Below, one piece after another: positions 2,211-48,894 of a DNA stretch of 64,000 nt. The stretch comes from Haliotis rufescens (Eukaryota), in contig NW_025963779.1 in assembly GCF_023055435.1 (NCBI RefSeq), positions 24,552,001-24,616,000 of the forward strand. Reading direction: 5' to 3'. The position numbers were made by a program, and so were the translations under genes. Position 1 is the first letter of the stretch; each line of letters starts with the position of its first letter. The notes below the pieces were generated by a model. The model saw only the letters and a program-made list of their open reading frames with translations. It was not told the DNA's origin and ran no database searches.

Positions 2211-2366
2211 ATGGGAGCTCGTCATGAAAAGCCCCTAGCGAGACCAGCATCTGGGACTCAGCCAGATGGAAGTATGAATGTAGCCCTGAGTCAGACCAGC
2301 CTGCCGGGGCATGACTTACATGGGACCATTATCATCATATACAAGTTCCCCGATGGAACACAAGGG
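2211..2366 (+). CDS. Deltex C-terminal-domain (DTC)-only gene, coding exon 1
   Basis: GTQPDGSM...LPGHDLHGTIIIIYKFPDGTQG aligns with the DTC start GNQPEGSM...LPGYETCGTISITYHLPSG. Acceptor tttgtag ends at 2191; donor GTGAGT at 2367, phase 0. An upstream coding exon is not excluded. Confidence 0.75.
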
Positions 2367-3217
2367 GTGAGTACACCACCTGCACAGACGCCCGCTAGGT
2401 GGCAGCATGGGACCACCCACGGCGCCATAGTGATGCGTGATGCATGATGGGTACAGAATGTACGGGTCCGTCGTATGAGACATGTGGCAACCCTCCTGGG
2501 ACTCCGGGGAGTATATGCCGCCTGTGGTTTCATGAGTTGGATAAAACCTGTAACTTTGTATTGTTAATATTATGTTCTCGCAGGCTACAGTGGATCATAC
2601 GGGTATTGTTATACTACCCTATTGAAAGGAAGAATACGTGTTGTTTATGGTCCAAATATCGAATATGAAGTAATCATTGATGCTAAAATGTATATGTTGA
2701 TATGCATCAATAATTCAGGAAACAAGACAACTGTCAATTGTGTTAAAAAGGAGCTTAACTTTGGGTAATTGTCAGTGCTAGCAAATTTGTGTCATGCCCC
2801 TAAGCACATATGTGTTTGTCTTCTGACTCAAATGCTGTGATGCAATTCAGTATAGAGTTGATTACCCTTCAATACCAAAAGATACTATATCAGTTACACA
2901 CATTGCGGTAATTCGACGAGTAGATCTTGGTTTTAAATCGTTAACATTTAAGGAAGCATATCGCTGGTATTCTCTTACGAGTTTTGCCTTTTACAGTTAC
3001 AGAGTGCAAGGGTAATTATTACGTCCCAAAGGTAGGCAGCGGAGAGTGTTCATCAACATTGTGCTGTGTATCACATCTCCATCACGACCTCCTGGCGGAA
3101 CAACACAGGGAACCCTTCCCAATTGATCCCCAACACAGCATGGGGTATCTTACACAGTATACTGAATAATTCGAGTTGTCTGTACACTAAATATTCGTAT
3201 GTACCCCCTGTTGCCAG

Positions 3218-3435
3218 AGAGACCACCCCAGCCCGGGAGACCAGTACAAGGGCACCACACGTGTAGCCTATCTGCCGGACTGTAGGGAAGGTAGAGGTGT
3301 TCTCCAGCTCTTGAGGACTGCATTTGACAGGAAGCTGACATTTACCATTGGTCGTTCTACAACCACCAGTGAAGAGAATGTCGTGACGTGGAACGGTGTT
3401 AGCCATAAGACACTGGCGGTAGCAGGAACTAGCAG
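3218..3435 (+). CDS. DTC-only gene, coding exon 2 (not in the ORF track)
   Basis: Manual translation: RDHPSPGDQYKGTTRVAYLPDCREGRGVLQLLRTAFDRKLTFTIGRSTTTSEENVVTWNGVSHKT. 218 nt with AG/GT borders, the same length and phase as exon 19597-19814. Confidence 0.88.
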
Positions 3436-3637
3436 GTACACACAGTCCGGTACACCAGCACTCTGAACCATTGTTTCCCAAAGGTGGATTCAGCATTTTT
3501 TTAAAGGGAGGGGTCCAAAATATCAAAATCTTCTCTCAGCCAATGTCACTGCCTTCAAAATACCCCGGGGTTCTGGCCCCCTGGACCCGATGGACCCCCT
3601 CTGCATCCGCCTATGTTTCCAAAACTAATCACCAGTA

Positions 3638-3791
3638 GTGAGTGAGTACGGTTTTACGCCGAAATATTCCAGCAATATCACGGCGGGGGACAGCAGAAAT
3701 GGGCTTCCCACATTGTACCCATGTCGGGAATCGAGCCCGGGTCTTCGGCGTGACGAGCGAACGCTTTAACCACTAGGCTACCTGACCGCCC
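3638..3791 (-). mobile_element. tRNA-derived SINE family 1 with 13-bp TSD
   Basis: Flanked by direct repeat CTAATCACCAGTA (3625-3637 and 3792-3804). Confidence 0.92.
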
Positions 3792-3889
3792 CTAATCACC
3801 AGTAACAAAGCAGTCGCTGTGAACATTAGAAAAACATATCATGTATTTTTTATTGAAGTTTCTTGTTTGCAAGTTCTGAAAACTAACAA

Positions 3890-4745
3890 CTCGAATCAAT
3901 GGATACTGGTTAGGGGAGTAGAATCACTGAATTCTAAAGGCGAGTACAATCACTTCATTTTGGCTAGTCGAGCATAATCACTGGATACAGGTAACGCGAG
4001 TAGAATCACTGAATTCTAAAGGCGAGTATAATCACTTCGTTTTGGCTAGTCGAGCATAATCACTGGATACAGGTAACGCGAGTAGAATCACGAGATACTG
4101 CTAAGGCGAGTAGAATAACTGTACACCGGTAAGGCGAGTATAATTACAAGATATTTGTAAGGCGTGTAGAATCACTTGATATAGGTACGCCGAGTAGAAT
4201 CCCTGGACACTGATAAGGTGAGTAGAATCACTGTATGCTGGTAGGGCGAGTAGAATCAATGTACACTAGTTAGGCGAGTAGAATTCCTGAACACTGATAA
4301 GGTGAGTAGAATCACTGTATGCTGGTAGAGCGAGTAGAATCAATGTACACTAGTTAGGCGAGTAGAATTCCTGAACACTGATAAGGTGAGTAGAATCACT
4401 GTATGCTGGTAGGGCGAGTAGAATCAATGTACACTAGTTAGGCGAGTAGAATTCCTGAACACTGGTAAGGCTTGTAGCTACAAATCACTGTACACTAATT
4501 AGGTGAGTAGAATCAATGTACACTAATTAGGCGAGTAGAACCACTGGATATTGGTAAGGCGAGTAGAATTCCTGAACACTGGTAAGGCTTGTAGAATCAC
4601 TGTACACTAATTAGGTGAGTAGAATCAATGTACACTAATTAGGCGAGTAGAACCACTGGATATTGGTAAGGCGAGTAGAATTCCTGAACACTGGTAAGGC
4701 TTGTAGAATCACTGTACACTAATTAGGCGAGTAGAATCAAAAGAT
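3890..4745. repeat. About 28-bp minisatellite (TAAGGCGAGTAGAATCACTG...)
   Basis: Tandem imperfect units inside an intron of the DTC-only gene. Confidence 0.9.
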
Positions 4746-5025
4746 ACCGTGTTTGGTAAATGTACTGTACACTAGAAGCCCCGTGACCTACGGCACCACA
4801 ATACGCCGTGCAAGGTTGCGTCCCTTATGCGTGCAAAGATCCAATGATGGTGGGTTTGAACCCCAGATTCTCCCTGCTTATGATTCTTGGTTTGTCAGTC
4901 CTAAACGTGTGATCGCGGGTTTTACTGAAGTTGTTAACAATGTTAAGACATGTTTCACACAGTGCTTCACGTTCTTCATTAAGCTGATATAACTCACATA
5001 AAAAACAAAGTGGCGCTAAACTTTA

Positions 5026-5296
5026 CTCACTCACCCACCCACCCACCCACCCACTCACANNNNNNNNNNNNNNNNNNNNNNNNNNNNNNNNNNNNNNNNN
5101 NNNNNNNNNNNNNNNNNNNNNNNNNNNNNNNNNNNNNNNNNNNNNNNNNNNNNNNNNNNNNNNNNNNNNNNNNNNNNNNNNNNNNNNNNNNNAACCACCC
5201 ACCCACAGACTCACTCACTCACCCACCCACCCATCCAATCACCCACCCACCCACTCACTCACTCACTCACTCACTCACTCACTCACTCACTCACTC
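5026..5296. repeat. (CACC/CACT)n microsatellite containing an assembly gap (N 5060-5192)
   Basis: Directly visible. Confidence 0.95.
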
Positions 5297-5297
5297 A

Positions 5298-5558
5298 GGG
5301 GGGCACGGGTGGCCCAGTCGTCTAAGGCGCCGCGATTCGCTGTGCAGAGTTGCGTCCCTTGGGCATGCCAGAAACCCATGATTGTGGGTTCGAATCCCGG
5401 TTCGCCCCGATTATGTTTCAAGGTTTGTCAGCACCGAAGTGGTAAACGTCTGAGACCTGCATCACTTAGGGCTTTCCTCCTACATTAAGCTGACACGCCG
5501 TGATATGACTGGACTACTGTTAAAAGCGGCGTTAAACCCAACTCACTCACTTACTCAT
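5298..5558 (+). mobile_element. tRNA-derived SINE family 3 (extended Leu/Ser-like head)
   Basis: GGTGGCCCAGTCGTCTAAGGCG...GGGTTCGAATCCC head; tail GCGGCGTTAAACCC(ACTC)n. Reverse copy at 29243-29525; degraded copies near 4810, 7300, 22501 and 57235. Confidence 0.8.
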
Positions 5559-5589
5559 TACTAACTCAGTACATTTTGTTTCTATTCAG

Positions 5590-5962
5590 GTGGAGTTACC
5601 CGGATCCAACGTATCTAGTCCAGGTGAGGGAGGAACTGGCCAGGAAAGGAGTCACTGAGAACGGGACAACTGGTTCTTCCAACTTGTTCCCTGGGGACAA
5701 CAGAGTCCACCCTGACGGTAAAGATGACAACAAGAAGGCGATGACATGCAATGAATACTACGGTGACCGTGCAGAATGTAGCAGACAGTGTTGTATATTC
5801 CAGCAGGAACGTGGAAGACCTGGAGGTAGGGACAGGGGCGGGCGACAGGCCCTGACAACACAAGCGTGTTGTAGTTATGGGCATCACAAGCGGCCACCAG
5901 GACAAGCTGTACGAGATCACCTGCCGGAGGCTGGGCACCATGACGTCGCCATGGTTGCATAA
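5590..5962 (+). CDS. DTC-only gene, terminal exon
   Basis: Acceptor ttcag, phase 2. WSYPDPTYLVQVREELARKGVTE matches the Deltex C-terminal GYPDPxYL...EL...GV motif. Joined CDS is 747 nt = 248 aa. Confidence 0.8.
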
Positions 5963-8566: not shown

Positions 8567-10483
8567 TCATTCTTCAAATACTGTCGCTCTTGTTAATACA
8601 TCATAGCTAATATAGAGGAACACACTTCACCTTTAATCATCCCATATAAACTTCTGTCGGAGAAACGAGAATTATAATTGCCGAAACGCACGAAATGGCC
8701 ACTGTTTACAAATATGCTGTATGTGTTACAACTTTGTTCTTGGTCAGATGATAGCCACGTATAGGTAAGGGGAAGAGGTGGTTCGACCAGCCAGGGGAAT
8801 CCGTACATTTCCAAACAGAGAATGCAAACCCCCACCGTCCTGGCATCCAATTTATGTTGTTTGTTTTATGTTGTTTAACGCCGCACTCAACAATATTCCA
8901 GCTATATGACAACGGTTTGTAAATAATCGAGTCTGGACCAGACAATCCAGTGATTCTCATCATGAACATCGATCCATGCAATTGGTATACGATGACGTGC
9001 ATCAACCAAGTCAGCAAGCCTGACCACCCGATCCCGTTAGTCGCCTTTTATGACAAGCATAGTCGCCTTTTACGGCAAGCATGGGTTGGTGAAGTCTTAT
9101 TCTACCCAGGATCTTTACGCATCCAATTTTAGAACTCTTGAGTCATATTAGTCTACGCAGCTGGTACAAGTAAATTAGACTGGGAATTGCACATAGAATG
9201 CGTGACCATGCGTGCTCATAAGCTTAAACCTTCAGGGATCGGCATCCATCGTACCGAAAGTGGTTGAGCCCCGCAAACACAGGCCATCGTGGCCTACATT
9301 CGTCATGACTCGCAACTTTCCGTAATTGGTTTGTCCCGGAATCGTACGAGTTTGTCACGATAGCCCTGGCGATGCTATGCCAGGAGGAGTTACCTCCCTT
9401 GCGACTACACTTGACGCGGCGTATCAGTGACAGTCCAGTGCAGACGACACTTAGTTTCATTAGGTATAATGTGACGGGCGAGGCAGACCTCTCACCGATC
9501 TCAACTCAGGGTAATACCGATGTTCCCTTGGAGAATATACTCTTACTATTTCTAAATCAACTTCTCATTTCATCGACTGGCTATCATATGCCCAATAAAT
9601 CAATGGTATTTTGATATGTTTGTGTGTAACTATTGCAATATAAATTGTATAAATATGAAAAGAGTATGAAACTATCATTTTGAATTTGTGAATGAAATGT
9701 TATATCTATTTAAGACATTGTAAATTCTAATCAATGCAGAAAATCATACGTAGCCTAAGTTGTCATATATTAAAATTTATATGCATTTGCAATATTGATG
9801 ATTCTAATCAACTCAAAGGTCGGTGTTTTTGCGTGTAATCTTGACTATATATCATCTCCCGACGACATCTTTATCTGTCGCAACATGCTTAGATAGCATA
9901 TACAACACACAGCTATGGGGTCTAGTTCACTTTGACCCGTTGAATCGTGACATAATTTCCTAGTTTCGGTTTGAAATCAGTCGCCCAAGACTGTGCAGTC
10001 CTGTCGTGGTCATCGAGGGTGAGTACATACGGAATGGCAGGCGCGTATTATATGTAATTTGAGCCTGTGTAGGTTAGTGTCTATCATATGTGTCTCCCGT
10101 GCCCTGTAGGCCGGTCATGGTAGACAGCCAGAGGGACTCGTCAAGCACAGCCAACAGTCGAACCAGGAAGTGGGTGTCCCCGCGTCCGTAAACAACATGG
10201 CTGTGCTCGGCGATCGTGAACTGGTACTGCAGTAGTTATATCGAGAGCAGAAAGTAGACAGGATGCTATATTTCCATGTTTGTAGATCGAGTGGTGTTAG
10301 GCTAATGGATATCATAATCCTTCAGCACGGACGCGTAGATTGTGTTATCATGTGATGTGATTTGTTGTTCACCCATATTTATTAATTTATTCAATATGTG
10401 CAAGTTACAGGGGTGTCGGTGATGATGCAACGTATAACATTAATTGAATTTGACCAATTGACATGCTCATTACTAATCGATGA

Positions 10484-10500
10484 ACTTTCGCTTTCGTTTT
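10484..10500 (-). promoter_or_regulatory. IRF-E/ISRE-like motif upstream of the macro-Deltex gene
   Basis: Minus strand AAAACGAAAGCGAAAGT fits AANNGAAANNGAAA. A second GAAAGCTGAAACT lies at 10792-10804. Motif match only. Confidence 0.35.
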
Positions 10501-10858
10501 ATGTAGATGCCTTGGGTAGAGTTATCTCCCCTTAATATTCACAAAGGCTATGTTGGGTCACCCAGTGACTGCAGGTTGATTCGGCTATTTATTCTATTTT
10601 CAGGCCAAGTGAGGTAATGTCGTCGCGGGACGTCCGTCGTCGTCCAGATATTGTTATATATTACTTTGTCATTTTTGTTAAATACGTAGTGCTCTTTGGT
10701 ACATGTATAGTTAGTAGTGGGACTCAAGATAATTGTTTTTTGTGATGTTTCAACTTGGACCTTTATTTGACCTTTGCACTTCAATCATAGTGAAAGCTGA
10801 AACTTTTTATGACCATTACTGAAACATTTTGTTTTGGAATGTAATGAAATTTAGTATA

Positions 10859-11236
10859 CCGTATTCGACGCAATAAGCGCCTAGGGCGCTCGCAAAATTA
10901 GAAAAAGGGGACTCTTATTAGAATATAGTTTTGGTAAGAAAAAAAAACCAGAGTTGAAAGATCTGTAATATTTTGGTTTATGTTGACAGCCTTATATGAT
11001 ACTAAAGAAAAGTCTGTGCGTATTTTACACGACATATATATTTTCAAGAATTTAAATGCCCATAATTAATGATGCATATAACACTCGAGTGCGTATTATG
11101 CGCGAATAAATAAGTCTTGTGTACACTGATCAATCGGAAGGGGTGCTAATTGGGATTGTTCACTAGCCAATATATCAGCACATAACGCACATATATCAGC
11201 ACATAACGCCGTGGGCGCTTATTACGTCGAATACGG
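10859..11236. mobile_element. Tc1/mariner-pogo-type MITE with TA TSD
   Basis: TIRs CCGTATTCGACG(C/T)AATAAGCGCC with TA on both sides. Second copy at 42851-43171. Confidence 0.88.
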
Positions 11237-11497
11237 TATGTGATAATCTAAACTCAACTCCTTCAACTGATCATACACTTAGACAATTAAGCTACTCCAT
11301 AGTTCACATAGTTAATTTCATGCCTATTGAACCTGTGCTGAGAGTAAGGTAATTTAGGTTAATTAAACGAAATTGTAACATATATACTCCCTAAGCTGTG
11401 AGTCCCCTATCCCTACTCAGTACTTTAATCTAATTAGGACTGATACATTACACCTGTAGGTATATTCCCTCTTTGCCTAAAGAAAAATAGCTAACAA

Positions 11498-11590
11498 TTG
11501 GGACGTCTAACTAATGGGACGTCTAACTAATGGGACGTCTAACTAATGGGATGGGACGTCTAACTAATGGGACGTCTAACTAATGGGATA
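11498..11590. repeat. 16-bp tandem repeat TGGGACGTCTAACTAA (about 5 units)
   Basis: Directly visible. Confidence 0.85.
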
Positions 11591-12671
11591 TAACCTGTAG
11601 TAGTGGTGGGGCTCAACATATGTGTTCCTTATTTCACCAACATTTTGAAATTTGCACTTTGGACAGTGATCTTAATTTCTTTCAAAATGCATTTCCTCAC
11701 ACCGTAAACATCATCTCGTCAGCAAGCTGTGTTCCTCTGGAGCTGAAACTTCATTTGCTTGTTCCCAACGATGACATCTGAATATCTGAATTTGTTCCCG
11801 AGGTTTGAATCCGAGTTTTATAGCAACAGCCGAGGCGGCCGTATCGACACTTTATGGCGACTGCTCAGTCAGTTTAGGTCAAAATGTGCAGTAATGGTTT
11901 TAAATTCTATCAAGGTACACTGTTGATTCTGTAAACATCCTGGACTAGGCCAGATTAAGGAAACTCTGAGGATTTTACTGTGTTATTTGTGAAACAATGG
12001 GAAAATATGTATACCTTTGAAAAAAAAGATCTCCTTAGAAGATACAAGCATGATAAGACTCAGAATTGAAACTTTTGTTTAAAGTAAAGTTGACTATTGT
12101 GTATTGCAACAAAGTTCTACATTAATACATTTATTCCTGCACATTTAGAAACATCGTGAATAATTAGAGTAGCTGCCTTTGTTGACATGTTAAACTGTTA
12201 ACGCTACCGTGACACTATTTACACAAATTACCACTCAACTCAAACGTTCCTGAAATCACATAACAATTACGATAACACGTCAAAATATTTTCTATTTATA
12301 AATTTCGGGGTCATCTCACGTTGATATTTATGAATAATGACATTGTGGAATCAGGTTATGTATTTTATGATGGTCTTTCGTTGAAAACCTTTTTGCAAGG
12401 AATAATAATTCGAAGAACTGGATATTGTCTTCAGTTATTTCAAAATAGGTAAAGGGCCCAAAAATAAAATTGCAAGGTCCTTAAATCAAGTTACATGACT
12501 TGATATGATTTGATGCGTTCCTGCAGTTCTAAAGTTGGTTGGAATCAGGCCATGACTTGCATTTCATGTGTGGTGATGCATTTGTGAAGAAAGTACATAA
12601 AATGAACGCACAGAACCAGCCAACATTTAACACTTCTTGGTTTTAAGTTGCAGGCTCGAGAAGAGGAGAGG

Positions 12672-13089
12672 ATGGCAGGTGCCCGTCCACTACCCACTCA
12701 GGAACTATTTAAGATGGCAAACCAGATGGAGGTGGTCACGTACGTCGGGGACATCACGACGATAAGTGACGCCAGTGGCGTTGTGACGGGGGAAGGGCTG
12801 GAGTTTGAACATGATAGTTTTGTCACAAGGGCTCTGAAAGAAAATTCAAGTGAATTTGCTGTGAAAAGAGAAGAACTAAAGGGGAAAGCAAGACGTTTCA
12901 AGTCGTGGTCAGTTCACACCACGATACTATCTGAACCATCGCCATTTAGTTATGTCTTTCACGCCGTCATCAAAAGCCCTGACCATACCAACAGATGGGT
13001 GAAGAAAACGGAACACTTATACAAGACAATAATGAAGAAAGCAGAGAAGAATGATGTGAAAGTGTTGGCTATTCCTCTTCTTGGTACAG
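12672..13089 (+). CDS. DTX3L: Macro-RING-DTC Deltex-family E3 ligase (DTX3L-like, copy A), exon 1: macrodomain N-part
   Basis: Macro motifs YVGDIT, YVFHAV, VLAIPLLGTG. Donor GTGAGA at 13090, phase 1. The start may lie further upstream (acceptor at 12647). The symbol is family-level; orthology is not shown. Confidence 0.85.
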
Positions 13090-13658
13090 GTGAGATATGT
13101 GTACTCATCTTATATTTCATTGATGATTATTATAGAAGTATTCATGTAAGTATTCTTTGCACAGAAATTTGTGCAGGTGTTCGTTGGCGGCTTCTGTCGT
13201 GCGCACAGGCAACAACCAGACCGCAACGTAATGAGTGAGTGATTGTTGTTTAACGTCGCAGTCAGCAATATTCCAGCTACGTCACAGCGTTTGTTGATTA
13301 TATTAGCATGATTGTGTAAGCTAGCATGAATTGTCGTTGTGGATGTAGCTGGGGATGCAGATGTATTTTCAGCTGGGAGCCCTGTACATTGATAAAGACA
13401 GAACTTCTCTGTTTGACACTGACGACAACAGGGAACCTTACATTTCAAATGCAATATGTATGTGAGTCAGAACGTCTGCCTCTGTCAAACAGAGTGTAAA
13501 AAAGCTTCGCATCAGGATTATTCCAGGCAGCTGGCCCAACTAACAACTCTTCACAATGTGTTTTGTCAGCATTTGTACACGGATCCACATGATGTCCCCC
13601 ACAAAATTTGCTTGTTGCCACCAACGATGACATCTGAATAGATGTCATCACTCAATGA

Positions 13659-13817
13659 GTGAGTGAGTGAGTATGGTTTTACGCCGCAATATTCCAGCAA
13701 TATCATGGCAGGGAACACCAGAAATGGGCGTCACACATTGTACCCATGTCGGGAATCGACCCGGGTCTTCGGCGTGACGAGCGAACGCCTTAGCCACTGG
13801 GCTACCCGACCGCCCCA
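13659..13817 (-). mobile_element. tRNA-derived SINE family 1 with 12-bp TSD
   Basis: TSD ATCACTCAATGA at 13647-13658 and 13818-13829, inserted at the edge of the satellite. Confidence 0.9.
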
Positions 13818-13829
13818 ATCACTCAATGA

Positions 13830-16800
13830 CCGACATGATAACTCACACAACCTTTGTACACTACTAGTGTCATTGCTCAAAGATCGACATGATATCCCAA
13901 ACAACACACATGTACACTACTAGTGTCATTACTCAAAGATCGACATGATGTCCCAAACAACACACATGTACACTACTACTGAAGTAGTGTCATCACTCAA
14001 AGATCGACATGATGTCCCAAACAACACACATGTACACTACTAGTGTCATTACTCAAAGATCGACATGATAACTCACACAACCTTTGTACACTACTAGTGT
14101 CATTACTCAAAGATCGACATGATGTCCCAAACAACACACATGTACACTGCTAGTGTCATTGCTCAAAGATCGACATGATAACTCACACAACCTTTGTACA
14201 CTACTAGTGTCATTACTCAAAGATCGACATGATAACTCACACAACCTTTGTACACTACTAGTGTCATTACTCAAAGATCGACATGATGTCCCAAACAACA
14301 CACATGTACACTACTAGTGTCATTACTCAAAGATCGACATGATATCCCAAACAACACACATGTACACTACTAGTGTCATTACTCAAAGATCGACATGATG
14401 TCCCAAACAACACACATGTACACTACTAGTGTCATTACTCAAAGATCGACATGATGTCCCAAACGACACAGATGTACACTACTAGTGTCATTACTCAAAG
14501 ATCGACATGATAACTCACACAACCTTTGTACACTACTAGTGTCATTACTCAAAGATCGACATGATGTCCCAAACAACACACATGTACACTACTAGTGTCA
14601 TTACTCAAAGATCGACATGATATCCCAAACAACACACATGTACACTACTAGTGTCATTACTCAAAGATCGACATGATGTCCCAAACAACACACATGTACA
14701 CTACTAGTGTCATTACTCAAAGATCGACATGATATCCCAAACAACACACATGTACACTACTAGTGTCATTACTCAAAGATCGACATGATGTCCCAAACAA
14801 CACACATGTACACTACTAGTGTCATTACTCAAAGATCGACATGATATCCCAAACAACACACATGTACACTACTAGTGTCATTACTCAAAGATCGACATGA
14901 TGTCCCAAACAACACACATGTACACTACTAGTGTCATTACTCAAAGATCGACATGATATCCCAAACAACACACATGTACACTACTAGTGTCATTTCTCAA
15001 AGATCGACATGATGTCCCAAACAACACACATGTACACTACTAGTGTCATTACTCAAAGATCGACATGATGTCCCAAACAACACACATGTACACTACTAGT
15101 GTCATTACTCAAAGATCGACATGATGTCCCAAACAACACACATGTACACTACTAGTGTCATTACTCAAAGATCGACATGATAACTCACACAACCTTTGTA
15201 CACTACTAATGTCATTACTTAAATATCGACATGATGTCCCAAACAACACACATGTACACTACTAGTGTCATTACTCAAAGATCGACATGAAGTCCCAAAC
15301 AACACACATGTACAGTACTAGTGTCATTACTCAAAGATCGACATGATGTCCGAAACAAAACACATGTACACTACTAGTGTCATTACTCAAAGATCGACAT
15401 GATGTCCCAAACAACACACATGTACACTACTAGTGTCATTACTCAAAGATCGACATGATAACTCACACAACCTTTGTACACTACTAGTGTCATTACTCAA
15501 AGATCGACATGATGTCCCAAACAACACACATGTACACTACTAGTGCATTACTCAAAGATCGACATGATGTCCCAAACAACACACATGTACACTACTAGTG
15601 CCATTACTCAAAGATCGACATGATATCCTAAACAACTCACATGTACACTACTAGTGTCATTACTCAAAGATCGACATGATGTCCCAAACAACACACATGT
15701 ACACTACTAGTGTCATTACTCAAATATCGACATGCTGTCCCAAACAACACACATGTACAGTACTAGTGTCATTACTCAAAGATCGACATGATGTCCCAAA
15801 CAACACACATGTACACTACTACTGCAGTAGTGTCATTACTCAAAGATCGACATGATGTCCCAAACAACAAACATGTACACTACTAGTGTCATTACTCAAA
15901 GATCGACATGATATCCCAAACAACACACATGTACACTACTAGTGTCATTACTCAAAGATCGACATGATGTCCCAAACAACACACATGTACACTACTAGTG
16001 TCATTGCTCAAATATCGACATGATGTCCCAAACGACACACATGTACAGTACTAGTGTCATTACTCAAAGATCGACATGATGTCCCAAACAACACACATGT
16101 ACACTACTAGAGTCATTACTCAAAGATCGACATGATAACTCACACAACCTTTGTACACTACTAGTGTCATTACTCAAAGATCGACATGATGTCCCAAACA
16201 ACACACATGTACACTACTAGTGTCATTACTCAAAGATCGACATGATGTCCCAAACAACACACATGTACACTACTAGTGTCATTACTCAAAGATCGACATG
16301 ATGTCCCAAACAACACATATGTACACTACTAGTGTCATTACTCAAAGATCGACATGATGTCCCAAACAACCTTTGTACACTACTAGTGTCATTACTCAAA
16401 GATCGACATGATATCCCAAACAACACACACGTACACTACTAGTGTCATTACTCAAAGATCGACATGATGTCCCAAACAACACACATGTACACTACTAGTG
16501 TCATTGCTCAAATATCGACATGATGTCCCAAACAACACACATGTACAGTACTAGTGTCATTACTCAAAGATCGACATGATGTCCCAAACAACACACATGT
16601 ACACTACTAGTGTCATTACTCAAAGATCGACATGATAACTCACACAACCTTTGTACACTACTAGTGTCATTACTCAAAGATCGACATGATGTCCCAAACA
16701 ACACACATGTACACTACTAGTGTTATTACTCAAAGATCGACATGATGTCCCAAACAACACACATGTACACTACTAGTGTCATTACTCAAAGATCGACATG

Positions 16801-17022
16801 ATGTCCCAAACAACACACATGTACACTACTAGTGTCATTGCTCAAAGATCGACATGATAACTCATACAACCTTTGTACACTACTAGTGTCATTGCTCAAA
16901 GATCGACATGATAACTCACACAACCTTTGTACACTACTAGTGTCATTACTCAAAGATCGACATGATAACTCACACAACCTTTGTACACTTCTAGTGTGAT
17001 CACTCAAGGATCGACATGATGT
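13830..17022. repeat. Intronic 56/54-bp satellite array (about 57 units)
   Basis: Constant core TGTACACTACTAGTGTCATTACTCAAAGATCGACATGAT plus one of two variable segments; followed by poly-C at 17023-17048. Confidence 0.97.
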
Positions 17023-17435
17023 CCCCCCCCCCCCCCCCCCCCCCCCCCAAAAGATTATACAGCAGCAGTGTCATAACTCACCTATCATTATGTCCAACGG
17101 TAGTGTCATTATTTAAAGACTGGTCCTGTATATCCTGTATTAGATATGTTCTGAGTCTTCGCAATTCAGAGTAGCGATCCTTAGCTGTGACAGGATCCGC
17201 TGAACGTGGGTTCGAATAGCAGAGTCTACCTGATTATGAACCTTTGTCTCTCGGAGTCACACCCGTGCATCACCGTACATGTGTTTCACCAAATTGAACT
17301 TCTTGAAAAGCTTGACTTTCACCCTTCCTTTATGGCAGTATTATCTATATGAACTCTCGTGAACAATCACAAAACTAAATACTTGTATGCAGTTTGAAGT
17401 CTGCCTTTCAACGTGTGTATGTCTTTGCTTGTCAG

Positions 17436-19183
17436 GTCGAGGTGGTGCATCTCCAGCAGACGCTGCCCAGGCCGCTGTGAAAGCCGTGGCTAAGTTTGAC
17501 AACCAGCGCCTGCAGAAGGTGTTTTTGGTTACAATCGACAAATCCATCGGCGACACATTGTATACCCAGTGTGAATACCAAGGAAGTCCTCTCTGCCGTG
17601 AGAAAAACTTTAAACGTCGAAACTCCATTAGGAGGTTTTTTTGTGGAGGTTCAAGAACACAGGATGAGGATAGGGCTAGCTATGGGAAGGCACCAATGGA
17701 CAACCGTCCACGTTCTAACCGTAACAAAGACCAGAATCACAGCCGTCCGGTCGAGAAGTACACACAAATTGGAGATGAAAGGAGAGATGAAACCAATTTT
17801 CACCGAAATCAATATACAGGATCGATCGAGGGAAATGAGAATCACAACAGATATAGACCAGAAAATGAGTATGATGGTAGCTATAGAAAGGCACCAATGG
17901 ACAACCGTTCAGGTTCTCATCGCAACAGAGACCAGAACCGCAGATACCCGGATGAGGGGTACGGACCAATTACCCATGGGTATGAAGATTATGAGAGGGC
18001 TGAAACCGATATACATACAGGAGCGGTGAACACAAGTGAGAAACGCCACAGAGATAGGCGATCTGAAACGGTTCCAAATTCACGTACTGTGAATGACCGT
18101 GAAAACAGATGTGACACACGAGAAGCAGGGCACAGGCATGTAGATGGACAGGGTGATGATTATGGAAAACCAGTAAAGACCATGCAGACAAACCCGGGTG
18201 ACACGACACACAGAAATAATGCACATCACGAAGGAGTTGATGGGCATGGACAGGACAGGGGAGACTACTCTGGGTACAACAAAGCAAACAATGAGACCAT
18301 GTTTTCTTTGCCGGATCGACATCACAATGGCGATACAAGGGGTGAATCTGGAAACAGGTCGCTGAACGTTGCTGACGTACATTCAAGTCACATCCAGTCA
18401 CAAACCTTTCCAAAGCATTCCAGGTCAGAACCTGTATCTTCTCGCGCAGTGTTACATGGGAACACCTATACCGCACCCCACCGGGACACCACACATGACA
18501 GCCATCATTTGAGTTATAAGGGATACCACACTGATAAACATGGCGATGATGGTAGTCGACAACTGAGGCAACAAACCAAGACCACCAAGGCAACTCTTGT
18601 CGTCGGTCAGACATGTTTGGATGAAAGCGCATCTGGATTTGATCACAATGGCAGTGTCCACCATGGCACTAGTCGCTCACCCTATCCATTGACCGTCAAC
18701 CTTGATGCTGTCGGCGGAGAGCCAAGGAATGTAAGGCATACTTCAAGTACAGACAGGGTACGTGGCATGGATAATTCCACCAGACCAGAAGTCGGAATAA
18801 AGACTGAAATAAATGGAGTTCCCTGTGGGGATAGTACAGTCCCGCCTGGAAATAGCAATGCGAAGGTAGCAAGAAAGGAGAGTAGCAATGATGTCAAGCT
18901 CCTTGATATGAGTGTAACCAGAAGCTGTCCTATTTGTATTGGTCCAATCACAGACCCAAAATGGCTGAAGAAATGCGGCCATGTGTTCTGTCGGGAGTGC
19001 ATAGATGACAGCTTCAAGAAGTTCAAACCCGTGTGTCCCAGCTGCAACATGGTGTATGGCGTCCTGACGGGGAACCAGCCGGAGGGGTCGATGGATGTCG
19101 CCTTCAGCGGGGAGCACCTGCCTGGGTATGAGACCTGTGGCACCATCAGTATCACATACCATCTGCCTAGTGGCCTACAGAGG
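17436..19183 (+). CDS. DTX3L: Macro-RING-DTC gene copy A, exon 2: macro C-part, disordered linker, C3HC4 RING, DTC start
   Basis: Phase-1 acceptor completes GTG|RGG...AAVKAV...LQKVFLVTID. RING CPIC...CGHVFCREC...CPSC is followed by GNQPEG. Donor GTAAGT at 19184. Confidence 0.92.
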
Positions 19184-19596
19184 GTAAGTGTCATTGCAGT
19201 TACTAAAATGCATGTCGTCTATACACATTTATATATACGTGTTAGACTCAAACGTCAAGTTTAAATTGGTACACGTTGAAGTAATGTGAAATATTTTATT
19301 AGTGATGCAGTGTTTACAGTCAAATAACAAATTACAAAAGGCAGGAAGAAATTGGATAATTTTTATATATTTCTTCATTTCTAACCCTTTTCGCAAACAC
19401 CTCGTGTCATCACTGAATTTCAGTGATCCATTCGTAAATTTTTTTTGTGTCTTTTCCGCCCAGTTGTGTCTGTTTCGGCAGATAACAGAGACATGTAATT
19501 ATCTGGCGTAGACGTTACATATACATGTATATATGTGCAACCTGATGTTTGGGTGTGATGTTATTAAAACTTAAACTATACCACATGGTCTCGCAG

Positions 19597-19814
19597 GAAG
19601 ACCACCCGAACCCAGGACAGCCCTACAAGGGAACAACGAGACGAGCTTTCCTGCCAGACTGCCGAGAAGGTAGAGATGTTCTCCGCCTCCTGAAGAAGGC
19701 GTTTGACAGGAAGTTAACCTTTACCATCGGTCGTTCTACAACTACCGGTCAAGAGAATGTCGTAACGTGGAACGACATCCACCATAAGACGAACATGGAA
19801 GGTGGACCTACGAG
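19597..19814 (+). CDS. DTX3L: Macro-RING-DTC gene copy A, exon 3 (DTC core)
   Basis: EDHPNPGQPY...AFDRKLTFTIGRSTTTG...WNDIHHKT, with AG/GT borders. Confidence 0.93.
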
Positions 19815-20116
19815 GTAAACAGATGGTGTTTGTTTATGCGTCAAAATTATAATATTATTTGAACTATTTGTTTCGAAGCAATTGAAATACTTCTGTTCAG
19901 ATCAGTAGCACGAATACAAGTATTCAGCAAGCTGTCATATTCTCAAGTACATATTACGAGATACTCGCGAGAGATAGGATAAGCATAAACAGTAACACAT
20001 CCTACATGAATCTTACTAATTAAAACTGGCATTTCATTGCTCTGATTTAGTCTTGGCGAGTTGTTTATGCGTAACGTCAGTGACATGTTTTAGTAACACT
20101 GACATTCTGTCCGTAG

Positions 20117-20207
20117 ATTCGGCTATCCCGACCCAGGCTATCTGGAGCGGGTGAAGGACGAGCTTGCCAGCAAGGGCGTGACGGAAAACAAAGAGACGAC
20201 GTTTTAG
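20117..20207 (+). CDS. DTX3L: Macro-RING-DTC gene copy A, exon 4 (not in the ORF track)
   Basis: Phase-2 acceptor; FGYPDPGYLERVKDELASKGVTENKETTF*. Joined CDS 418+1748+218+91 = 2475 nt = 824 aa. Confidence 0.92.
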
Positions 20208-21404
20208 CGGACTCCGTCGTCTCTGAATGACCTTCAGGTGTCGAGAGAAGCATAGACATCATAGCCACACCACGTATTCGGAAGTGCTGTATGTTCCTTG
20301 TAATCCACACATGAGCCAGGTTACATGAAAAAACCCTGTTAAGACTATACTGAATGACTTCGACCAGAGATACCTGAACTAGGTGATGAAGAATGAGTGA
20401 CATTTTATAAATAATTCACATACCCGATGTACGTACGATTCTATATGATGACATTTATTTGGTACATGGGGGCTACGGTGGACCCCCATTCGTACGAGGC
20501 GACCAATGTATCGTTGGTCACGCTCGATAACTTAATTTATTGCGTGTAAGCTTACCCCACGGTGTCGGACTTTGTACATTATATCAATCAATGATTTTTC
20601 TCGTCCTGATTCCATAATGTACAGGCCTCAAAAAACAAAAAAAATTGTTATTTCTTATGTTCGTCCTTTTAACTGCAAATATTGTTTGAGAATGTCTGTA
20701 TTTGTGTTCCATGTGTGATAGGAAGGTGTTATATATCCTATTACTATAAAATCGATCTATAAATCGATCTAAAATCGAACCCAGTTCTATTCCCAAGGAA
20801 TAGTTATTGTTCCTATATATAAAAGTGACCAAACCCTCTCAACAACATATGAAATCTCTGCTGTAAGCAGAATCTATTGTGCGATTCCTACGATATCATA
20901 ACCAAGTTTTTATGAATCACTCTAAAATAGTGATGATACCAGGTGTTAGGTGAAAGACGAGTCTATCCAATGTGAGCGTATTGTGCCCGAATGGGGGAAC
21001 CCGTCACAAACACATGGGAAGGCACGTCGTTTGATCGCCTGAAAAGACATATAGAAACAACAATCTTCGACTATTTTGGAGGACCCTATGCCCGCGTTAT
21101 ATGGGGGTTGACTGTTGACGGAAGCAGTGCAGAGTGAAGGGACGGAAGAGCAATTATAATCAGATGTCGTTAGGCAATATATTATGTGTATATTTGTATA
21201 TCCTGTGCACATTCGTTTACAATGTCCTTTGCATGTTTACACAGATTTTTTCTAGGTTGTCTATTCATGGTTGTCAGTGATGTATTTAAGGATTTTGAAT
21301 ATTACGTTGTCACTAATAAATCAGAAAGTAGTTTATTGATGTTATTGAAACGATACGTTTTCTTATTTAACAAATTCACGATTGTCCGTTGTTGCTGGTA
21401 CCTT

Positions 21405-22310
21405 AGCGTCACCCTACATGCTTCAATGTACGTCACCCTACACACTTCAATGTACGTCACCCTACATACTTCAATGTACGTCACTCTACATGCATCAATG
21501 TACGTCACCCTACATGCATCAATGTACGTCGCCCTACATGCTTCAATGTACGTCACCCTACATGCATCAATGTACGTCACTCTACATACTTCAATGTACG
21601 TCACCCTACATGCATCAATTACGTCACCCTACACACTTCAATGTACGTCACCCTACATACTTCAATGTACGTCACTCTACATGCACCAATGTACGTCACC
21701 CTACATGCATCAATGTACGTCGCCCTACATACAGCAATGTACGTCACTCTACTTACTTCAATGTACGTCACCCTACATGCTTCAATGTACGTCACCCTAC
21801 ATGCATCAATGTACGTCACTCTACATACTTCAATGTACGTCACCCTACATACAGCAATGTACGTCACTCTACATACTTCAATGTACGTCACCCTACATAC
21901 AGCAATGTACGTCACTCTACTTACTTCAATGTACGTCACCATACATACAGCAATGTACGTCACTCTACATACTTCAATGTACGTCACCCTACATGCATCA
22001 ATGTACGTCACTCTACATACAGCAATGTACGTGACCCTACATACAGCAATGTACGTCACCCTACATGCTTCAATGTACGTCACCCTACATGCATCAATGT
22101 ACGTCACTCTACATACTTCAATGTACGTCATCCTACATACAGCAATGTAGGTCACCCTACATACAGCAATGTAGGTCACCCTACATACAGCAATGTAGGT
22201 CACCCTACATACAGCAATGTAGGTCACCCTACATACAGCAATGTAGGTCACCCTACATACAGCAATGCACGTCATCCCATATGCACTAATGTTCATGACC
22301 CTACATGCAA
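21405..22310. repeat. 24-bp minisatellite (CAATGTACGTCACCCTACATGCTT)
   Basis: Tandem units that produce spurious repetitive ORFs in several frames. Confidence 0.95.
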
Positions 22311-24288
22311 TATACGTTGGCATACATTATATTAGCTAACTACTTATATATTCTACGTAATTCACTTTACCCCATCGGCATGGCAATTCCTGATTAGAAC
22401 ATTGGTATGATGTTGTTTGTTGTTTGCTCATGTGAAACTTCGCAGATAAACGCTCACTAATTCTCGTTGTTAGTCCCTGTCTTCTCTGATCTCCTCTTCG
22501 AGGGGGCACGGTGGTCATTGGAACAGGCATAATTCAACGTGTAGAGTCGCGTCCTTTAATTGCAAGGATGTGTTCTGATCGTCGGTTCGAATCCCACATC
22601 CGCCCTTGATAGTATCTTTGGTTTGTGAACATCATATTGTGATCATTCCACCAAAGCCGTAAACGTCTACGATAAGCGCTACTTTGGGCTTATTCCCCAA
22701 TGAATCCCACACCGTGGTGTAACTATCCAAATCTAAACCACTGACACATAGATTAACTATAGTTATATGAAAGAATCGGATATTCTTTTACTTTCTTTGA
22801 GTACTATATGTCAATTCAGTGTTTTTGTGTTTTCATTATCAACATAATTAAAAAACCTAACGACCCGTGAAGATCCGGGGTAGAATAGGTCTTCAGCGAC
22901 CTAGTCTTGCCGTAAAAGGCGACTATGCTTGTTGTAAGAGGCGACTAACGGAATCGGGTGGTCAGACTCTCTGACTTGGTTGATGCATGTCATCGTATCC
23001 CAATTGCATGGATCGATGCTCATGATGTCAATCACTGGATTGTCTGGTTCAGACTCCATTATATACACACCGCCGACATATAGCTGAATAATTGCTGAGT
23101 GCGGCGTTAAACAACAAACAAAATAAAACAAACATACCTGACACATGTAAATCATCTGATGCTTATCAATCATTGACCTTTCAGTATCGGTTTCCTGGGT
23201 CCATAAAACATGATATTCCCCGAATTGTGGTCAATAGTTGTTTTATTACGTAATGTAAACAGGAAACATTTGATTTATTTATAACCATCAAAATTCAACC
23301 ATAATTCAATCACTCAAGATGACAGTGTGAGTGAGTGAGTTAAAATTTTAAGTCACATCGGCAATATTTCAGGCATATCGTGACTCCAGATGACAGAGGC
23401 AGTGGCAGGAGATACTGCTTCACAACAAGCTTTGCGTTACGAACTGTTTGATTGGCATTCTTGAAGTTAGTGAGGAAATAAGAAAACCTAAACCTTCTGG
23501 TTTATTGCATTTAGCGACGTTTCGATGTAGATTCTTACACTGTTACATTCTCGCTGATTCCATTGGCTAAACCGCGCAGGACAATACCACTTCTGATCGC
23601 TGCACGGCAAGTAGGATCTCAGGGCAATGCTAAGTTTTAAGGAAAGTATATGTAATGTGACCATTTATTAACCAGTGAAAGTACAGATATAATTTGTAAA
23701 TGTAATAATTTATTGTATCTATTGAATATATTGAAAAAAATGATTTGTAACAGAAAATGCACACCGTTGTAGTTTGCGATAATATACCATTATTGATGAG
23801 TGAGTGAGCGAGTTAGTGAGTGACTTAGTAATAATCATACTTATTTATAAGATATTTATTACCGATAAACTCTTGTTGGACACCTCTCAATCACTCCAGG
23901 TTAGAATTGGTCCCCTGCAACCGGTCGAAGCCAGTGAATAGTGCGGTGGTAAGCCAAAAGATTTAAGCATCCGATCACTACGAAGACACGGGTTTGATTC
24001 TTTGCATGGGTGAAGCACAAATAGGCTTAACCGTATAAAAGTTGATAATTTTACGTAACTATAGGATATTTTGCTACACAATGCACTTCTGAACAATGGT
24101 TTAAGGCACAGAATATAGGATACAAACAAAGACAGTTCTTCAAATATGCAGAGTAAGAGTTATGTTTCACCGACCGGTGTCTCTGCTATACACAATATCC
24201 CCTTTCACTAGCTACAATTGTGCCTCATTACTGGTTGCCTATATCCGCCGTAATACTGCTTAGATCAGTGTAAAGCCTCACTCAGTCA

Positions 24289-25104
24289 CTACAGATAGTC
24301 CATATAAGTTTTGATTGGAGCTTCGGGAGACGGGTCTCTGTCCCTCTTGTAAGGAATCTCCGTATGGTCCCGCTCCCATATCTCCAGCAGTAGAGAACTG
24401 AGACGCTGATTGGCTGCCACCTGGTCCGTGCACCTCAGTTTCTGTATGTTCTGCTCTGTAATCAATGGCATCCTTGCTGCATAGATAAGCAGTTTGGTCT
24501 CATCCCATGACACTTGACTCTGAGCTAGAACCCAGTCAACGATGGCTTTCAGCAGCACAAACTCACTTGACACTATAAGTTCTTTGTGAAGGACGACATC
24601 ATACAGCTGACGGAAACTCATGCCATTCAGTTCCCCTTTCTTCCATATATACTCAAAATGACGAAGGATAAAGTGATATACATCCATCTTGATGGTCGAG
24701 ACTTTATTTTTGATAGCTAGATCATGCAAAGTCAAATAAATATGCGCCCCTATGAGGTCACAATGCCTGAACTCCTCTTCAATAGCCAGCTTGAAGTCAT
24801 CCATTTGAAGTACTGTTGCTGTGTTTATGAGGAAGACGATGTTGTCTTCATGTAGCGGCGGTAGAACACCTGTGTACATGAAATTTAGGATATTCCTGAA
24901 GGCATTGACATCTACATCCTCCAACGTCATTTCACCATCCATAGCTGACAATCGCTGCTCCATATAAGGCGACATGGACTTGACAATGACCTTGTGACAC
25001 GGGAATGATACATCACCAACGACCACTGTCAGATCCGAGTATGACCCTCCATCCAGGGACTTCTTTAAACCCGCCATGAATAGGGATTTGTGTGAAATTT
25101 CCAT
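24289..25104 (-). CDS. BTB-BACK domain protein (kelch-like family without a propeller), 271 aa
   Basis: SDLTVVVGDVSFPCHKVIV...SPY...FRNILNFMYTG (BTB); ELIVSSEFVLLKAIVDW...RMPLI (BACK). Acceptor at 25107; possible upstream ATG-G at 25890-25893. Confidence 0.9.
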   Translation of the reverse strand: MEISHKSLFMAGLKKSLDGGSYSDLTVVVGDVSFPCHKVIVKSMSPYMEQRLSAMDGEMTLEDVDVNAFRNILNFMYTGVLPPLHEDNIVFLINTATVLQMDDFKLAIEEEFRHCDLIGAHIYLTLHDLAIKNKVSTIKMDVYHFILRHFEYIWKKGELNGMSFRQLYDVVLHKELIVSSEFVLLKAIVDWVLAQSQVSWDETKLLIYAARMPLITEQNIQKLRCTDQVAANQRLSSLLLEIWERDHTEIPYKRDRDPSPEAPIKTYMDYL

Positions 25105-27439
25105 TTCTGAAAGAAATAAAATAATTGTTTTTACAACATATTTGTTTTATCGAACAAATATACTCATTTTATCCTCATGCAAAGATATTCTGGAACCATT
25201 TTTTTCAAATATATCCGTGGTCCTCACCAGAAAATCAGTATATCCCAGGTCCTCTCCAGCGTATCAAAATATCCCAGGCCCTCTCCAGCAAATCAAATAT
25301 ATCTCCAGCATATCAAAAGTGATAATTTATGTAATGGGGTGAAAAGGTGTAATAAAATGCGAAAATAAAGTTTCACGAAATTACCTGAATAAAACTAAAT
25401 AAAGGCTGAAAAAATTGTTCGTGGGTCAGCGTGGGAGTACATGAAATATCCAGGACCTGTATATTAGTAAACCTTGACTGACTATTCATGTCAGTGACTA
25501 GGTGGAGTTGTGATGGTTGTTCTAAAAGGAACATGGAACTTGCGTGCATATTGTGTTTATTTTGATTGAATGACATTGAAGAGATGAATAGGTGTGAAAC
25601 AAATACAAACATATTTGGTTTAGTTTTGTCCTCTGGCAAATTCATGCTCACCCTCATAACCTATAATGTTACTATATTAGCATAAGACCAGTGTACCTCA
25701 AGTGGGTGTCAGCTCTACAGCTATGTTAAGTCTATATTACAGAAAACATTGAAGCACACTTCGTCGTGGAACAAATGCGTGTAACACTGATGTGAGAGCA
25801 GTTATGCTCCTCCTAACTCTAGTCTATCAATCCGTATTACCTGTACAACACTTACAGTGAAGCGTATGTCCTACAGGAAAGTTACCTACCCATGCTGAGG
25901 TCAAGCTGTCATATATCTCAACTTCTACACCTGCACCTCTTCGGGCCGTCCTCACCGAGTTGATACCCTGCTCAGAGAAATACTGTTCATAACGAGGTTA
26001 AACCTCTATTCCCTATCTGTGTCACCTTATATCATCAGACAGAGTGTCACCAGGCTCAGATGAAACTGACCTACATTTCTTGCCATGACTTGCCCAACAT
26101 ACTTCGATCTAATGTGACGTTGCGTTACGGGCCAACTGTACGTGGTTGTCATTGGGTTTAGGGATCGTGTCATCTTCTCCACAGCGAACTCTGAGGTACA
26201 CGTAAAGGTGAAGTTTATAAGGTGTCTCTATCAGAAGGCATTGAGAGACGCGAAACTATCAAGTCAACATAATTATTCATGGAAAAAACCTCTGCTCACA
26301 CCTGTCTCATGGTTGTTTGTTTGTTTGTTTGTTGTTTAACGCAGCACCCGGCAATGTTCCATCTATATGGAGGCGGTCTGTAAATAATCGAGCCTGGACC
26401 ATACAATCAAGTGATTGACATCAAGAGCGTCGATCAACTCAATCGGGATATGAAGAAATGCATCAACCAAGTCAGCGAACCTGACCACCCGTTCCGTTTG
26501 TCGCCTCTTACGACAAGCATAGTCGCCTTTTACGGCAAGCATGGGTTGCTGAAGACATTTTCTACCTCGAATCTTCACGGGTCTGTCTCTATTATATATT
26601 GCATGGCATGACCATCCGTAATATGATGAATATATAACGTCAACGACAATGTATAACCAGTCTTGATTATCCGCTGAAGCCGATTCCATTGGGCGAAAAA
26701 GAAAAAAAGCGGTGAAAGTTACATGAATGGATCACTGAAAACAGTGATGACACCAGGTTTTCGCGAAAAGGGTAATCATGTCCCAGCCTACCGGTGGCAC
26801 CCGCCCAGCGTACACTATGCATTAAATTGTAAGTGTCTTGCTTAACGCCGCACAGGAGTACTCCTGCCATGCGACGGCGTCCTACAAACATACCAGACAA
26901 TCAAGTGATGGTCCCGAAAGTTCAGTGACACGAAAGTCCTTTTACTAAATCCATATATCAAGAATTACACAATGTCACCAGTCACGTGTTTGGGTGTGTG
27001 AGGTGTGTCAACATATGCACATACCCAACACTACAGGCCATGTAAATGAGGTGAATCTCTGAAGCAAGGTGAAATGTATAACGTTTCTTTCTTGGAACTA
27101 GTGAAACTACTTATATACTACTCAACTTTTGATAGGGATATTGTTTTTTATTCACCCCCTCTTATTATGTCATTACACATACCATGTAAATGTAGTAGTA
27201 TGATATACCTCAGTATCCATATTATGAAGCCAACAAACACCCAACAAATGGTATACAATTAACAATTGTATTATAATATTAACTAGGTTTACAAATCAAA
27301 ACAATTACTATTCATCATTTACAATGGCAGTACATAATATAATGGCAGTTTAAAATATCAGTAAAAGGTTAATGGTTACAGTAAAAGTCAGTGCTTATAA
27401 TATTCACCTGGCAGTAACAGTGGTCAAGCTTTCAAAATA

Positions 27440-48480: not shown

Positions 48481-48894
48481 GTAAGTGTCATTGGAGTTAC
48501 TAAAATGCGTGGCGTGTATATACATTAATATATACGTGTCAGACTCAAACGTACACGTTGAAGTAATGTGAAATATTTTAATAGTGATGTAGTGTTTACA
48601 ACAAAAGAACAATACAAAAAGCATGAAGAAATTGGATATTTTATATATGTCTGAAACGACATGTTGGAGTTTTCTTCATTTCCTACCCTTTTCGCAAACA
48701 CCTCATGTCATCACTGAATTTCAGTGATCCATTCGTATATTTTTTCATTTGTCTTTTCCGCCCAGTGGTATTTGTTTCGGCAGATAATAGAGACTTGTAA
48801 TTTTCTGACGTAGACGTTATATATACATTTATGTGCAGCCTGATGTTTGGGTGTGATGTTTTTAAAACTTAAACTATACCACATGGTATTGCAG

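Follow-up and report, generated by a model that had tools for sequence, protein, structure and literature searches.

The analysed stretch of Haliotis rufescens DNA (contig NW_025963779.1, positions 24,552,001 to 24,616,000; 64,000 nucleotides, hereafter the window) carries on its plus strand the gene LOC124131666, whose product combines a macrodomain with a RING finger and a C-terminal DTC domain of the Deltex type. The original prediction, made from the sequence without database searches, had joined four phase-compatible exons into an open reading frame (ORF) of 824 amino acids (aa). The borders, GT/AG sites and phases of these exons can be read directly from the letters of the window and agree with that proposal. 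Exon 1 (12672-13089) begins with an ATG at 12672 and ends with CTT GGT ACA G, followed by a GT donor at 13090; exon 2 (17436-19183) lies between an AG acceptor at 17434-17435 and a GT donor at 19184-19185; exons 3 and 4 occupy 19597-19814 and 20117-20207, the latter closing with a TAG stop codon at 20205-20207. Their lengths (418, 1748, 218 and 91 nucleotides, nt) add up to 2475 nt, i.e. 824 codons and a stop, and the junction phases (1/0/2) are compatible.

All four exons are 100% identical to the RefSeq protein XP_046351053.2 (P0008; isoform X5 of LOC124131666, 841 aa), so the predicted model equals the RefSeq model except at the N-terminus. There the exons stood but the proposed start did not: the RefSeq protein begins 17 aa earlier, with nine codons from an upstream coding exon (10197-10223, plus strand, 27 nt) and eight further codons. 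The upstream exon encodes MAVLGDREL in frame, has a GT donor and joins position 12648, giving a macro exon of 12648-13089 (residues 10-157 of the protein map to 12648-13091). The exons were searched singly, and XP_046351053.2, being identical to each of them, stood in for the spliced product; residues are numbered accordingly.

The macro exon codes for the macrodomain through PLLGT and the first base of Gly157, and includes the codon of D44 (GAC, 12750-12752) as well as the motifs TGEG and DSF. Intron 1 (13090-17435, 4346 nt, phase 1) divides the Gly codon after PLLGT as G/GT, and the resulting junction, PLLGTG/RGG, is split exactly as had been claimed. Exon 2 opens with the remainder of the macro fold (17436-17584), comprising the RGGASP loop 2, the last helix and the last strand, up to approximately residue 206. 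It continues with a linker rich in R, N, D, H, S and T that is fast-evolving (17648-18892, residues 228-642), a C3HC4 RING finger (18926-19045, residues 654-693) and the first part of the DTC domain (19067-19183). Exon 3 is the DTC core, with the HHKT motif and the codon of the catalytic His801 (CAC, 19780-19782), while exon 4 provides the DTC C-terminus, including Glu827 (GAG, 20160-20162). Most of intron 1 is taken up by a minisatellite (13855-17025, detected with Tandem Repeats Finder, TRF) with a 56-bp unit, 56.8 copies, 92% matches and a higher-order period of 278, which gives rise to numerous spurious short ORFs on either strand.

Domain content and predicted structure

Exon 1 alone produced a Pfam Macro match of 20.8 bits over profile positions 53-104, below the cut-off of 22 bits. 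From exon 2 alone, a RING match (36 bits) and positions 1-38 of the DTC profile were obtained. That profile continues unbroken through exon 3 (positions 41-110, 117 bits) and exon 4 (positions 113-133), and a single DTC profile running across two splice junctions strongly supports both of them. In the complete protein the Macro match rises to 31.7 bits (residues 107-170), above the cut-off, and spans the junction at residue 157; the RING finger matches zf-C3HC4_2 with 35.5 bits, and the DTC domain (PF18102) matches with 206.8 bits over residues 701-833 (profile positions 1-133), directly after the RING finger. Neither a PARP catalytic domain nor a WWE domain was found by Pfam in this protein, which in the first respect differs from the macro-PARPs PARP9 and PARP14.

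AlphaFold2 was run on XP_046351053.2 with a 23-sequence family alignment, and the model was compared with the PDB by Foldseek. Residues ~25-226 form a confident alpha/beta domain, with a predicted local distance difference test score (pLDDT) of the macro part above 90 through about residue 210. The RING-DTC segment (residues 650-836) is also confidently modelled (pLDDT 85-95). Residues 228-642 have pLDDT values below 50, so approximately 415 residues are predicted to be disordered; the low-complexity linker had been put at roughly 450 aa.

The closest structure to the N-terminal domain is macroH2A1.1 (2fxk), with a template modelling score (TM) of 0.86 and a root mean square deviation of 2.1 Å. 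It is followed by macroH2A1.2, macroH2A2, Oceanobacillus MacroD, AF1521, PARP14 macrodomains 1-3 and PARP15 macrodomain 2 (TM 0.76-0.85; about 0.8 for the PARP14 macrodomains and AF1521). Profile search and fold prediction thus agree on the presence of a macro fold. For the RING-DTC segment the top match is DTX2 (6y22, E 9.5e-18), and DTX2 and DTX1 structures match at E 1e-16 to 1e-17, while the DTC domain alone superimposes on that of human DTX3L (3pg6) with TM 0.92 and 59% identity.

The macrodomain and RING-DTC as one polypeptide

The macro fold is divided by intron 1, and the exon that bears the RING finger also codes for the last strand and helices of this fold. From the exon 1 and exon 2 parts AlphaFold2 assembles one compact macrodomain (pLDDT >90). 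The genome contains 11 paralogous macro exons, all ending with PLLG(T/S), which indicates that the intron position is common to them. Orthologue models from H. cracherodii, H. rubra and H. asinina show Macro, RING and DTC domains and the same PLLGTGRGG junction; the identity of exon 2 to orthologues drops to 54% and 41%, and that of exon 3, the DTC core, exceeds 90%. Seven loci of contig C1, LOC124131666 among them (24.45, 24.52, 24.56, 72.25, 72.26, 79.10 and 79.12 Mb), have a DTC match that is preceded on the same strand by a macro exon, and in five of the seven a long open frame with a DTC start is present between macro exon and DTC match.

One polypeptide therefore carries the macro fold and the RING-DTC ligase, as was originally proposed; the basis is the split domain, the RefSeq models in four Haliotis species, the intron position shared by the paralogues and the fold prediction. 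An annotation artefact, in which the macro exon and the RING-DTC exons would belong to two separate genes, has some support in macro-only database models (P0013, 200 aa; P0014, 179 aa, which continues into the intron). In addition, other RefSeq isoforms join the macro exon of LOC124131666 to a paralogous cassette 33 kb away, so the predictor is able to link far-apart exons at this locus. We nevertheless regard such an artefact as very improbable. To be complete, the macro fold needs about 50 residues from the start of exon 2, the exon that also encodes the RING finger; phases fit and splice sites are canonical; 11 paralogues have the intron position in common; and the same fusion has been modelled in at least 13 mollusc species. 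Moreover, contigs of only 2.1-2.5 kb contain the entire coding sequence of some family members and are too short for introns of the size found in the abalone gene.

The RING-DTC ligase module

The RING finger has all eight ligands of a C3HC4 domain (C654, C657, C670, H672, C675, C678, C690 and C693), and these are invariant in orthologues. The HHKT motif comprises residues 801-804, and the C-terminal Glu is E827, so a complete RING followed by a DTC with both of these features is present, in accordance with the initial description. His582 and Glu608, the catalytic pair of DTX2 (PMC7615817), align with His801 and Glu827 and have the same 26-residue spacing. In DTX2, His582 contacts the DTC-bound ADP-ribose and is reported to be important for ligand binding (PMC7615817); binding of ADP-ribose by the DTC domain itself is described in PMC7442474. 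Judged by these residues, the RING-DTC half should be an active Deltex-type ligase.

Relation to DTX3L and other Deltex ligases

DTX3L gives the best DTC match in the profile search (E 8.7e-58, 199.7 bits, versus 194.7 bits for DTX2 over a longer stretch). Its DTC domain shares 59% identity with the abalone domain and those of DTX1, DTX2 and DTX4 share 37-45%, values that come from pairwise comparison. The likening of the abalone protein to DTX3L was thus apt. In both, a RING finger is followed by a DTC domain, the catalytic His and Glu are kept, and a macrodomain module appears to serve a Deltex ligase. The macrodomains of PARP9 are thought to hold vertebrate DTX3L on ADP-ribosylated targets; in contrast to that pair, the abalone macrodomain is located in the same chain, is single and is of a divergent type. 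DTX1, DTX2 and DTX4 unite a reader of ADP-ribose polymers with RING-DTC in one chain, although the reader in these proteins is a tandem WWE and the abalone module is a macrodomain.

The architecture itself is hardly new. The gene has a RefSeq model with its Pfam domains on record, and the layout is mollusc-wide. According to a 2026 preprint (10.64898/2026.04.23.720386), DTX3L lost its macrodomain when PARP9 emerged, the PARP9 macrodomains are proposed to have taken over the function of the lost domain, and an RRM is present in most metazoan DTX3L orthologues. Fusion of a poly-ADP-ribose reader (tandem WWE) to RING-DTC is already known from DTX1/2/4 (PMC7615817). Given the preprint and these precedents, the idea that a macrodomain and a DTX3L-like ligase formerly made up one protein is already part of the literature. 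The abalone protein is filed here, on the strength of its sequence, as an uncharacterised member of a known architecture and not as a strict DTX3L orthologue. Literature searches retrieved neither a biochemical study of a macrodomain-DTX3L-like fusion nor a paper naming the LOC124131666 locus.

The macrodomain pocket

In an alignment to AF1521, the Asp of the GDIT motif is kept (D44), as is loop 2, the G-x-G phosphate loop (P152-L-L-G155-T-G157-R-G-G). Along with the macro fold, these features are shared with macroH2A1.1, PARP14 and AF1521, from which the abalone domain differs in its low identity (only 13-21%) and in two motifs, having T56-G-E-G59 in place of NAAN and D65-S66-F67 in place of GGG. 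The divergence of both, pointed out from the start, is evident in the alignment. D44 and the G-x-G loop are canonical ligand-contacting elements, the Asp contacting adenine, and the Gly-rich loop of a macrodomain normally lies against the diphosphate and the distal ribose.

Across 34 aligned DTC-linked macrodomains, the best-conserved positions are D44, A150, P152, L153, G155 and G157; canonical NAAN and GGV motifs occur in six of the 34, and the first Gly position of loop 1 is occupied by a small residue (S or G) across the family. Since the canonical ligand-contacting elements are conserved, the pocket can be argued to be still in use, and ADP-ribose binding by the abalone macrodomain is plausible. 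Assignment of this domain to a macrodomain class by sequence was attempted and failed: the PDB matches were spread over Thermus TTHA0132, AF1521, PARP14, MacroD2, macroH2A and PARP9, with E values from 1e-7 to 1e-2.

Hydrolysis of the MacroD type depends centrally on a conserved Asn (Asn92 of MacroD2, which shields the 2''-OH) and a Gly of the catalytic loop (PMC7050489). In the abalone protein neither the catalytic Asn nor the Gly-rich loop is retained (the motifs read TGEG and DSF), and MacroD-type hydrolysis is therefore unlikely, which makes the earlier suggestion of a non-hydrolase a reasonable one. A different kind of enzyme might nevertheless be envisaged, removing ADP-ribose or ubiquitin-ADP-ribose, for instance via Glu58, and making the protein a writer and an eraser in one. 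E58 sits within the former NAAN motif and is shared by at least 90% of the members of the 23-sequence family alignment, and canonical PARGs use consecutive catalytic glutamates in the motif GGGx(6-8)QEE (PMC7050489). We consider this improbable: the abalone macrodomain lacks a PARG-like GGG-X-QEE signature as well as the Gly and Asn required by MacroD-type enzymes, and no Foldseek match favours a hydrolase class.

Proposed function

The observations are best explained by a macro-linker-RING-DTC ligase that uses Deltex chemistry and in which the macrodomain is a non-hydrolytic anchor, an interpretation that we hold to be probable as a whole. In such a protein, the RING finger would recruit a ubiquitin-charged E2, and the DTC domain would bind ADP-ribose, with His801 and Glu827 activating its 3'-hydroxyl as in DTX2. 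Ubiquitin would then be transferred to ADP-ribose marks or to lysines close by. The macrodomain would hold the ligase, via the long flexible tether, on mono-ADP-ribosylated targets, and its role would parallel that thought for the PARP9 macrodomains in the vertebrate DTX3L system. Taken by itself, the role of the macrodomain as a non-hydrolytic ADP-ribose anchor appears fairly likely from the residues of its pocket.

Several points weigh against this interpretation. The Pfam Macro match in XP_046351053.2 covers the C-terminal half of the profile only, and the 13089/17436 junction is a predicted one, drawn from RefSeq models, conservation and the split domain. Pfam (E ≤ 0.001) detected Macro, RING and DTC domains only, with neither an RRM nor a KH domain; in this the protein differs from DTX3L, and the disordered linker of about 415 residues stands in the place of the RRM and KH-like domains. 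Literature searches yielded no expression or immune-induction data for LOC124131666. Within the pocket, the loop-1 glycines are replaced by D65-S66-F67, the second of these positions being freely variable across the family, and the model fits macroH2A1.2 (TM 0.82) and macroH2A2 (0.78-0.81) almost as well as macroH2A1.1. To our knowledge, the macrodomains of macroH2A1.2 and macroH2A2 do not bind ADP-ribose.

The altered pocket motifs, this near-equal fit to presumed non-binders and the sub-threshold Macro score of exon 1 alone would all suit a real fusion whose macrodomain no longer binds ADP-ribose and acts instead as a protein-interaction or structural module, or accepts another ligand. The ligase would then rely on the DTC pocket, a notion compatible with the contact between His582 and DTC-bound ADP-ribose in DTX2 (PMC7615817). 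We find this alternative doubtful, though serious, as the adenine-contacting Asp and the G-x-G loop are the most conserved elements in the 34 members, which is hard to square with an unused pocket, and as the first position of loop 1 is small family-wide. Of the proposal that an ADP-ribose reader has been fused to the ligase, then, the fusion stands, and the designation "reader" is putative, given the D-S-F loop 1 and the resemblance to macroH2A1.2 and macroH2A2.

If the anchor mechanism is correct, abalone and other molluscs would possess a naturally occurring single-chain counterpart of the PARP9-DTX3L pair of vertebrates. The abalone protein would also offer a compact system in which the coupling of ADP-ribose reading to ubiquitylation could be tested with no reconstitution of a heterodimer. 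Its value is limited by the presence of the architecture in databases and in the 2026 preprint, and the ligand of the macrodomain is a prediction only. The family's spread among molluscs would be consistent with a function in invertebrate innate immunity. An Aplysia co-expression study places a DTX3L-like transcript among antiviral genes, which is context and not evidence for the abalone gene.

Distribution of the family

Word-based protein searches, run with the whole of exon 2 and with the macro part of the protein P0002, returned four Haliotis orthologues only, in which Macro, RING and DTC domains were already recorded in the precomputed Pfam annotation. An exhaustive profile search was needed to reveal the wider family. 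A profile built from the 11 macro exons was compared with 1.84 billion representatives and matched 710 proteins at E ≤ 0.001, 140 of them at E ≤ 1e-10; the family profile also picks up AF1521 (E 6e-5, about 155 residues). With a local DTC model, a DTC domain C-terminal to the macrodomain was detected in 45 of the 149 best-matching representatives, and these 45 proteins are 437-3381 aa long.

All DTC-bearing proteins with a named source organism are from molluscs, and three others derive from Logan contigs. Besides Haliotis, the sources are the gastropods Gigantopelta aegis and Nucella lapillus and the bivalves Saccostrea cucullata, S. echinata, Pinctada imbricata, Argopecten irradians, Mercenaria mercenaria, Solemya velum and Potamilus streckersoni. 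Macro(1-4)-RING-DTC proteins thus occur in at least 13 mollusc species, the four Haliotis species included. They have the same domain order as the abalone protein and related macrodomains (E 1e-10 to 1e-50); one, from Mercenaria, is named "PARP14-like". Eight multi-macro members scanned with Pfam each have two to four Macro matches and a DTC domain, and seven of them a RING finger. Where the source of multi-macro members was looked up, it was a bivalve in every case (6/6). The names of three relatives without DTC were also looked up: a protein named PARP14 from the sponge Sycon, a "PARP14-like" protein from the starfish Patiria and a "Macro domain-containing protein" of Potamilus.

LOC124131666 belongs to this mollusc-wide family of DTX3L-like ligases with one to four macrodomains. 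Unlike the multi-macro members, the abalone protein possesses a single, divergent macrodomain, which is of the T-G-E type, and it looks like a reduced family member. Macrodomains of this type, in which Asn is replaced by Thr, Glu58 is conserved and loop 1 is non-glycine, are found beside RING-DTC in gastropods and in some bivalves.

Segmental duplication and RefSeq isoforms

A recent segmental duplication repeats the region 9307-26000 at 45197-61032, with 88-98% DNA identity. In the duplicate, a copy of the small 5' exon is retained at 46042, but a stretch of 6.5 kb corresponding to 10366-16871 has been deleted, with the loss of the macro exon and of the greater part of intron 1. A separate macro exon belonging to the downstream duplicate was considered and rejected, as none was found by tblastn and the DNA alignment shows the deletion.

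Exon 2 of the duplicate (copy B, 46735-48480) retains an open frame of 582 codons, and a segment at 48877-49110 follows it. The RING finger encoded by copy B is without its first two cysteines (CPIC is changed to -PIY), and copy B is not followed by exon 4, the exon with the catalytic Glu. A nested partial copy (copy C, 53892-55094) extends from the middle of the RING to the stop codon and contains the second half of the RING, the DTC core and exon 4. Between exon 2 of the original (copy A) and that of copy B, the synonymous divergence (dS) is about 0.06-0.08, and the ratio of nonsynonymous to synonymous divergence (dN/dS) is 0.26 over the RING and the start of the DTC domain and 0.83 over the linker. 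The abalone genome contains dozens of DTC loci, with tandem duplicates decaying beside active copies.

In RefSeq isoforms X1-X4 (P0006, P0001, P0007 and P0005), the macro exon 12648-13089 is joined to exon 2 of copy B, 33.6 kb downstream, and some of these proteins carry two DTC domains. The four isoforms may represent either real alternative 3' cassettes or chaining by the predictor. A more speculative idea, which we rate as unlikely, is that the T-G-E macrodomain recognises ubiquitin-ADP-ribose or another modified nucleotide, and that the macro exon is alternatively spliced to active and RING-defective cassettes. Were this the case, recognition of the ligase's own ubiquitin-ADP-ribose product could provide product-guided spreading or feedback, and a single reader exon would, through splicing, give rise to both active and decoy isoforms.

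Other features of the window

The window begins with a gene (2250-5662) that has a DTC domain only and lacks a RING finger. A run of 133 N (5060-5192) represents an assembly gap or masked sequence. The closest paralogue of the macro exon (58% identical) lies 13.5 kb before the start of the window, at C1:24538466-24538861, and no RING-DTC of its own is found in the interval. The macro-only protein P0013, which is 58% identical to the macro region of LOC124131666, closely resembles this upstream exon. The upstream macro exon and the DTC-only gene could be parts of one split or spliced gene.

Three single-exon ORFs encoding BTB-BACK proteins are present on the minus strand (24289-25104, 29605-31362 and 59321-60136). 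Two of the three are in the duplicated segment, and the one of 585 aa has a sub-threshold Kelch match only. Between the duplicates there is a minus-strand ORF of 352 aa (40564-41622) whose HTH_Tnp_Tc3_2 and DDE_3 domains mark it as a transposase of the Tc1/mariner type. Two 22-bp satellites (33169-35350, 99.5 copies; 36429-37054, 28.5 copies) account for the high GC content and the strongly negative GC skew of the block at 32-36 kb.

The interval between copies B and C holds two minus-strand ORFs, one GDSL-lipase-like (50043-50654, 38 bits) and one of 446 aa with no Pfam match (52256-53596). Immediately 3' of both the Deltex gene and the duplicate copy, short-period coding-like repeats are found on the plus strand (21382-22335 and 56259-57068); they match Pfam Cornifin/SPRR with 57-66 bits and may be low-complexity sequence rather than a gene.

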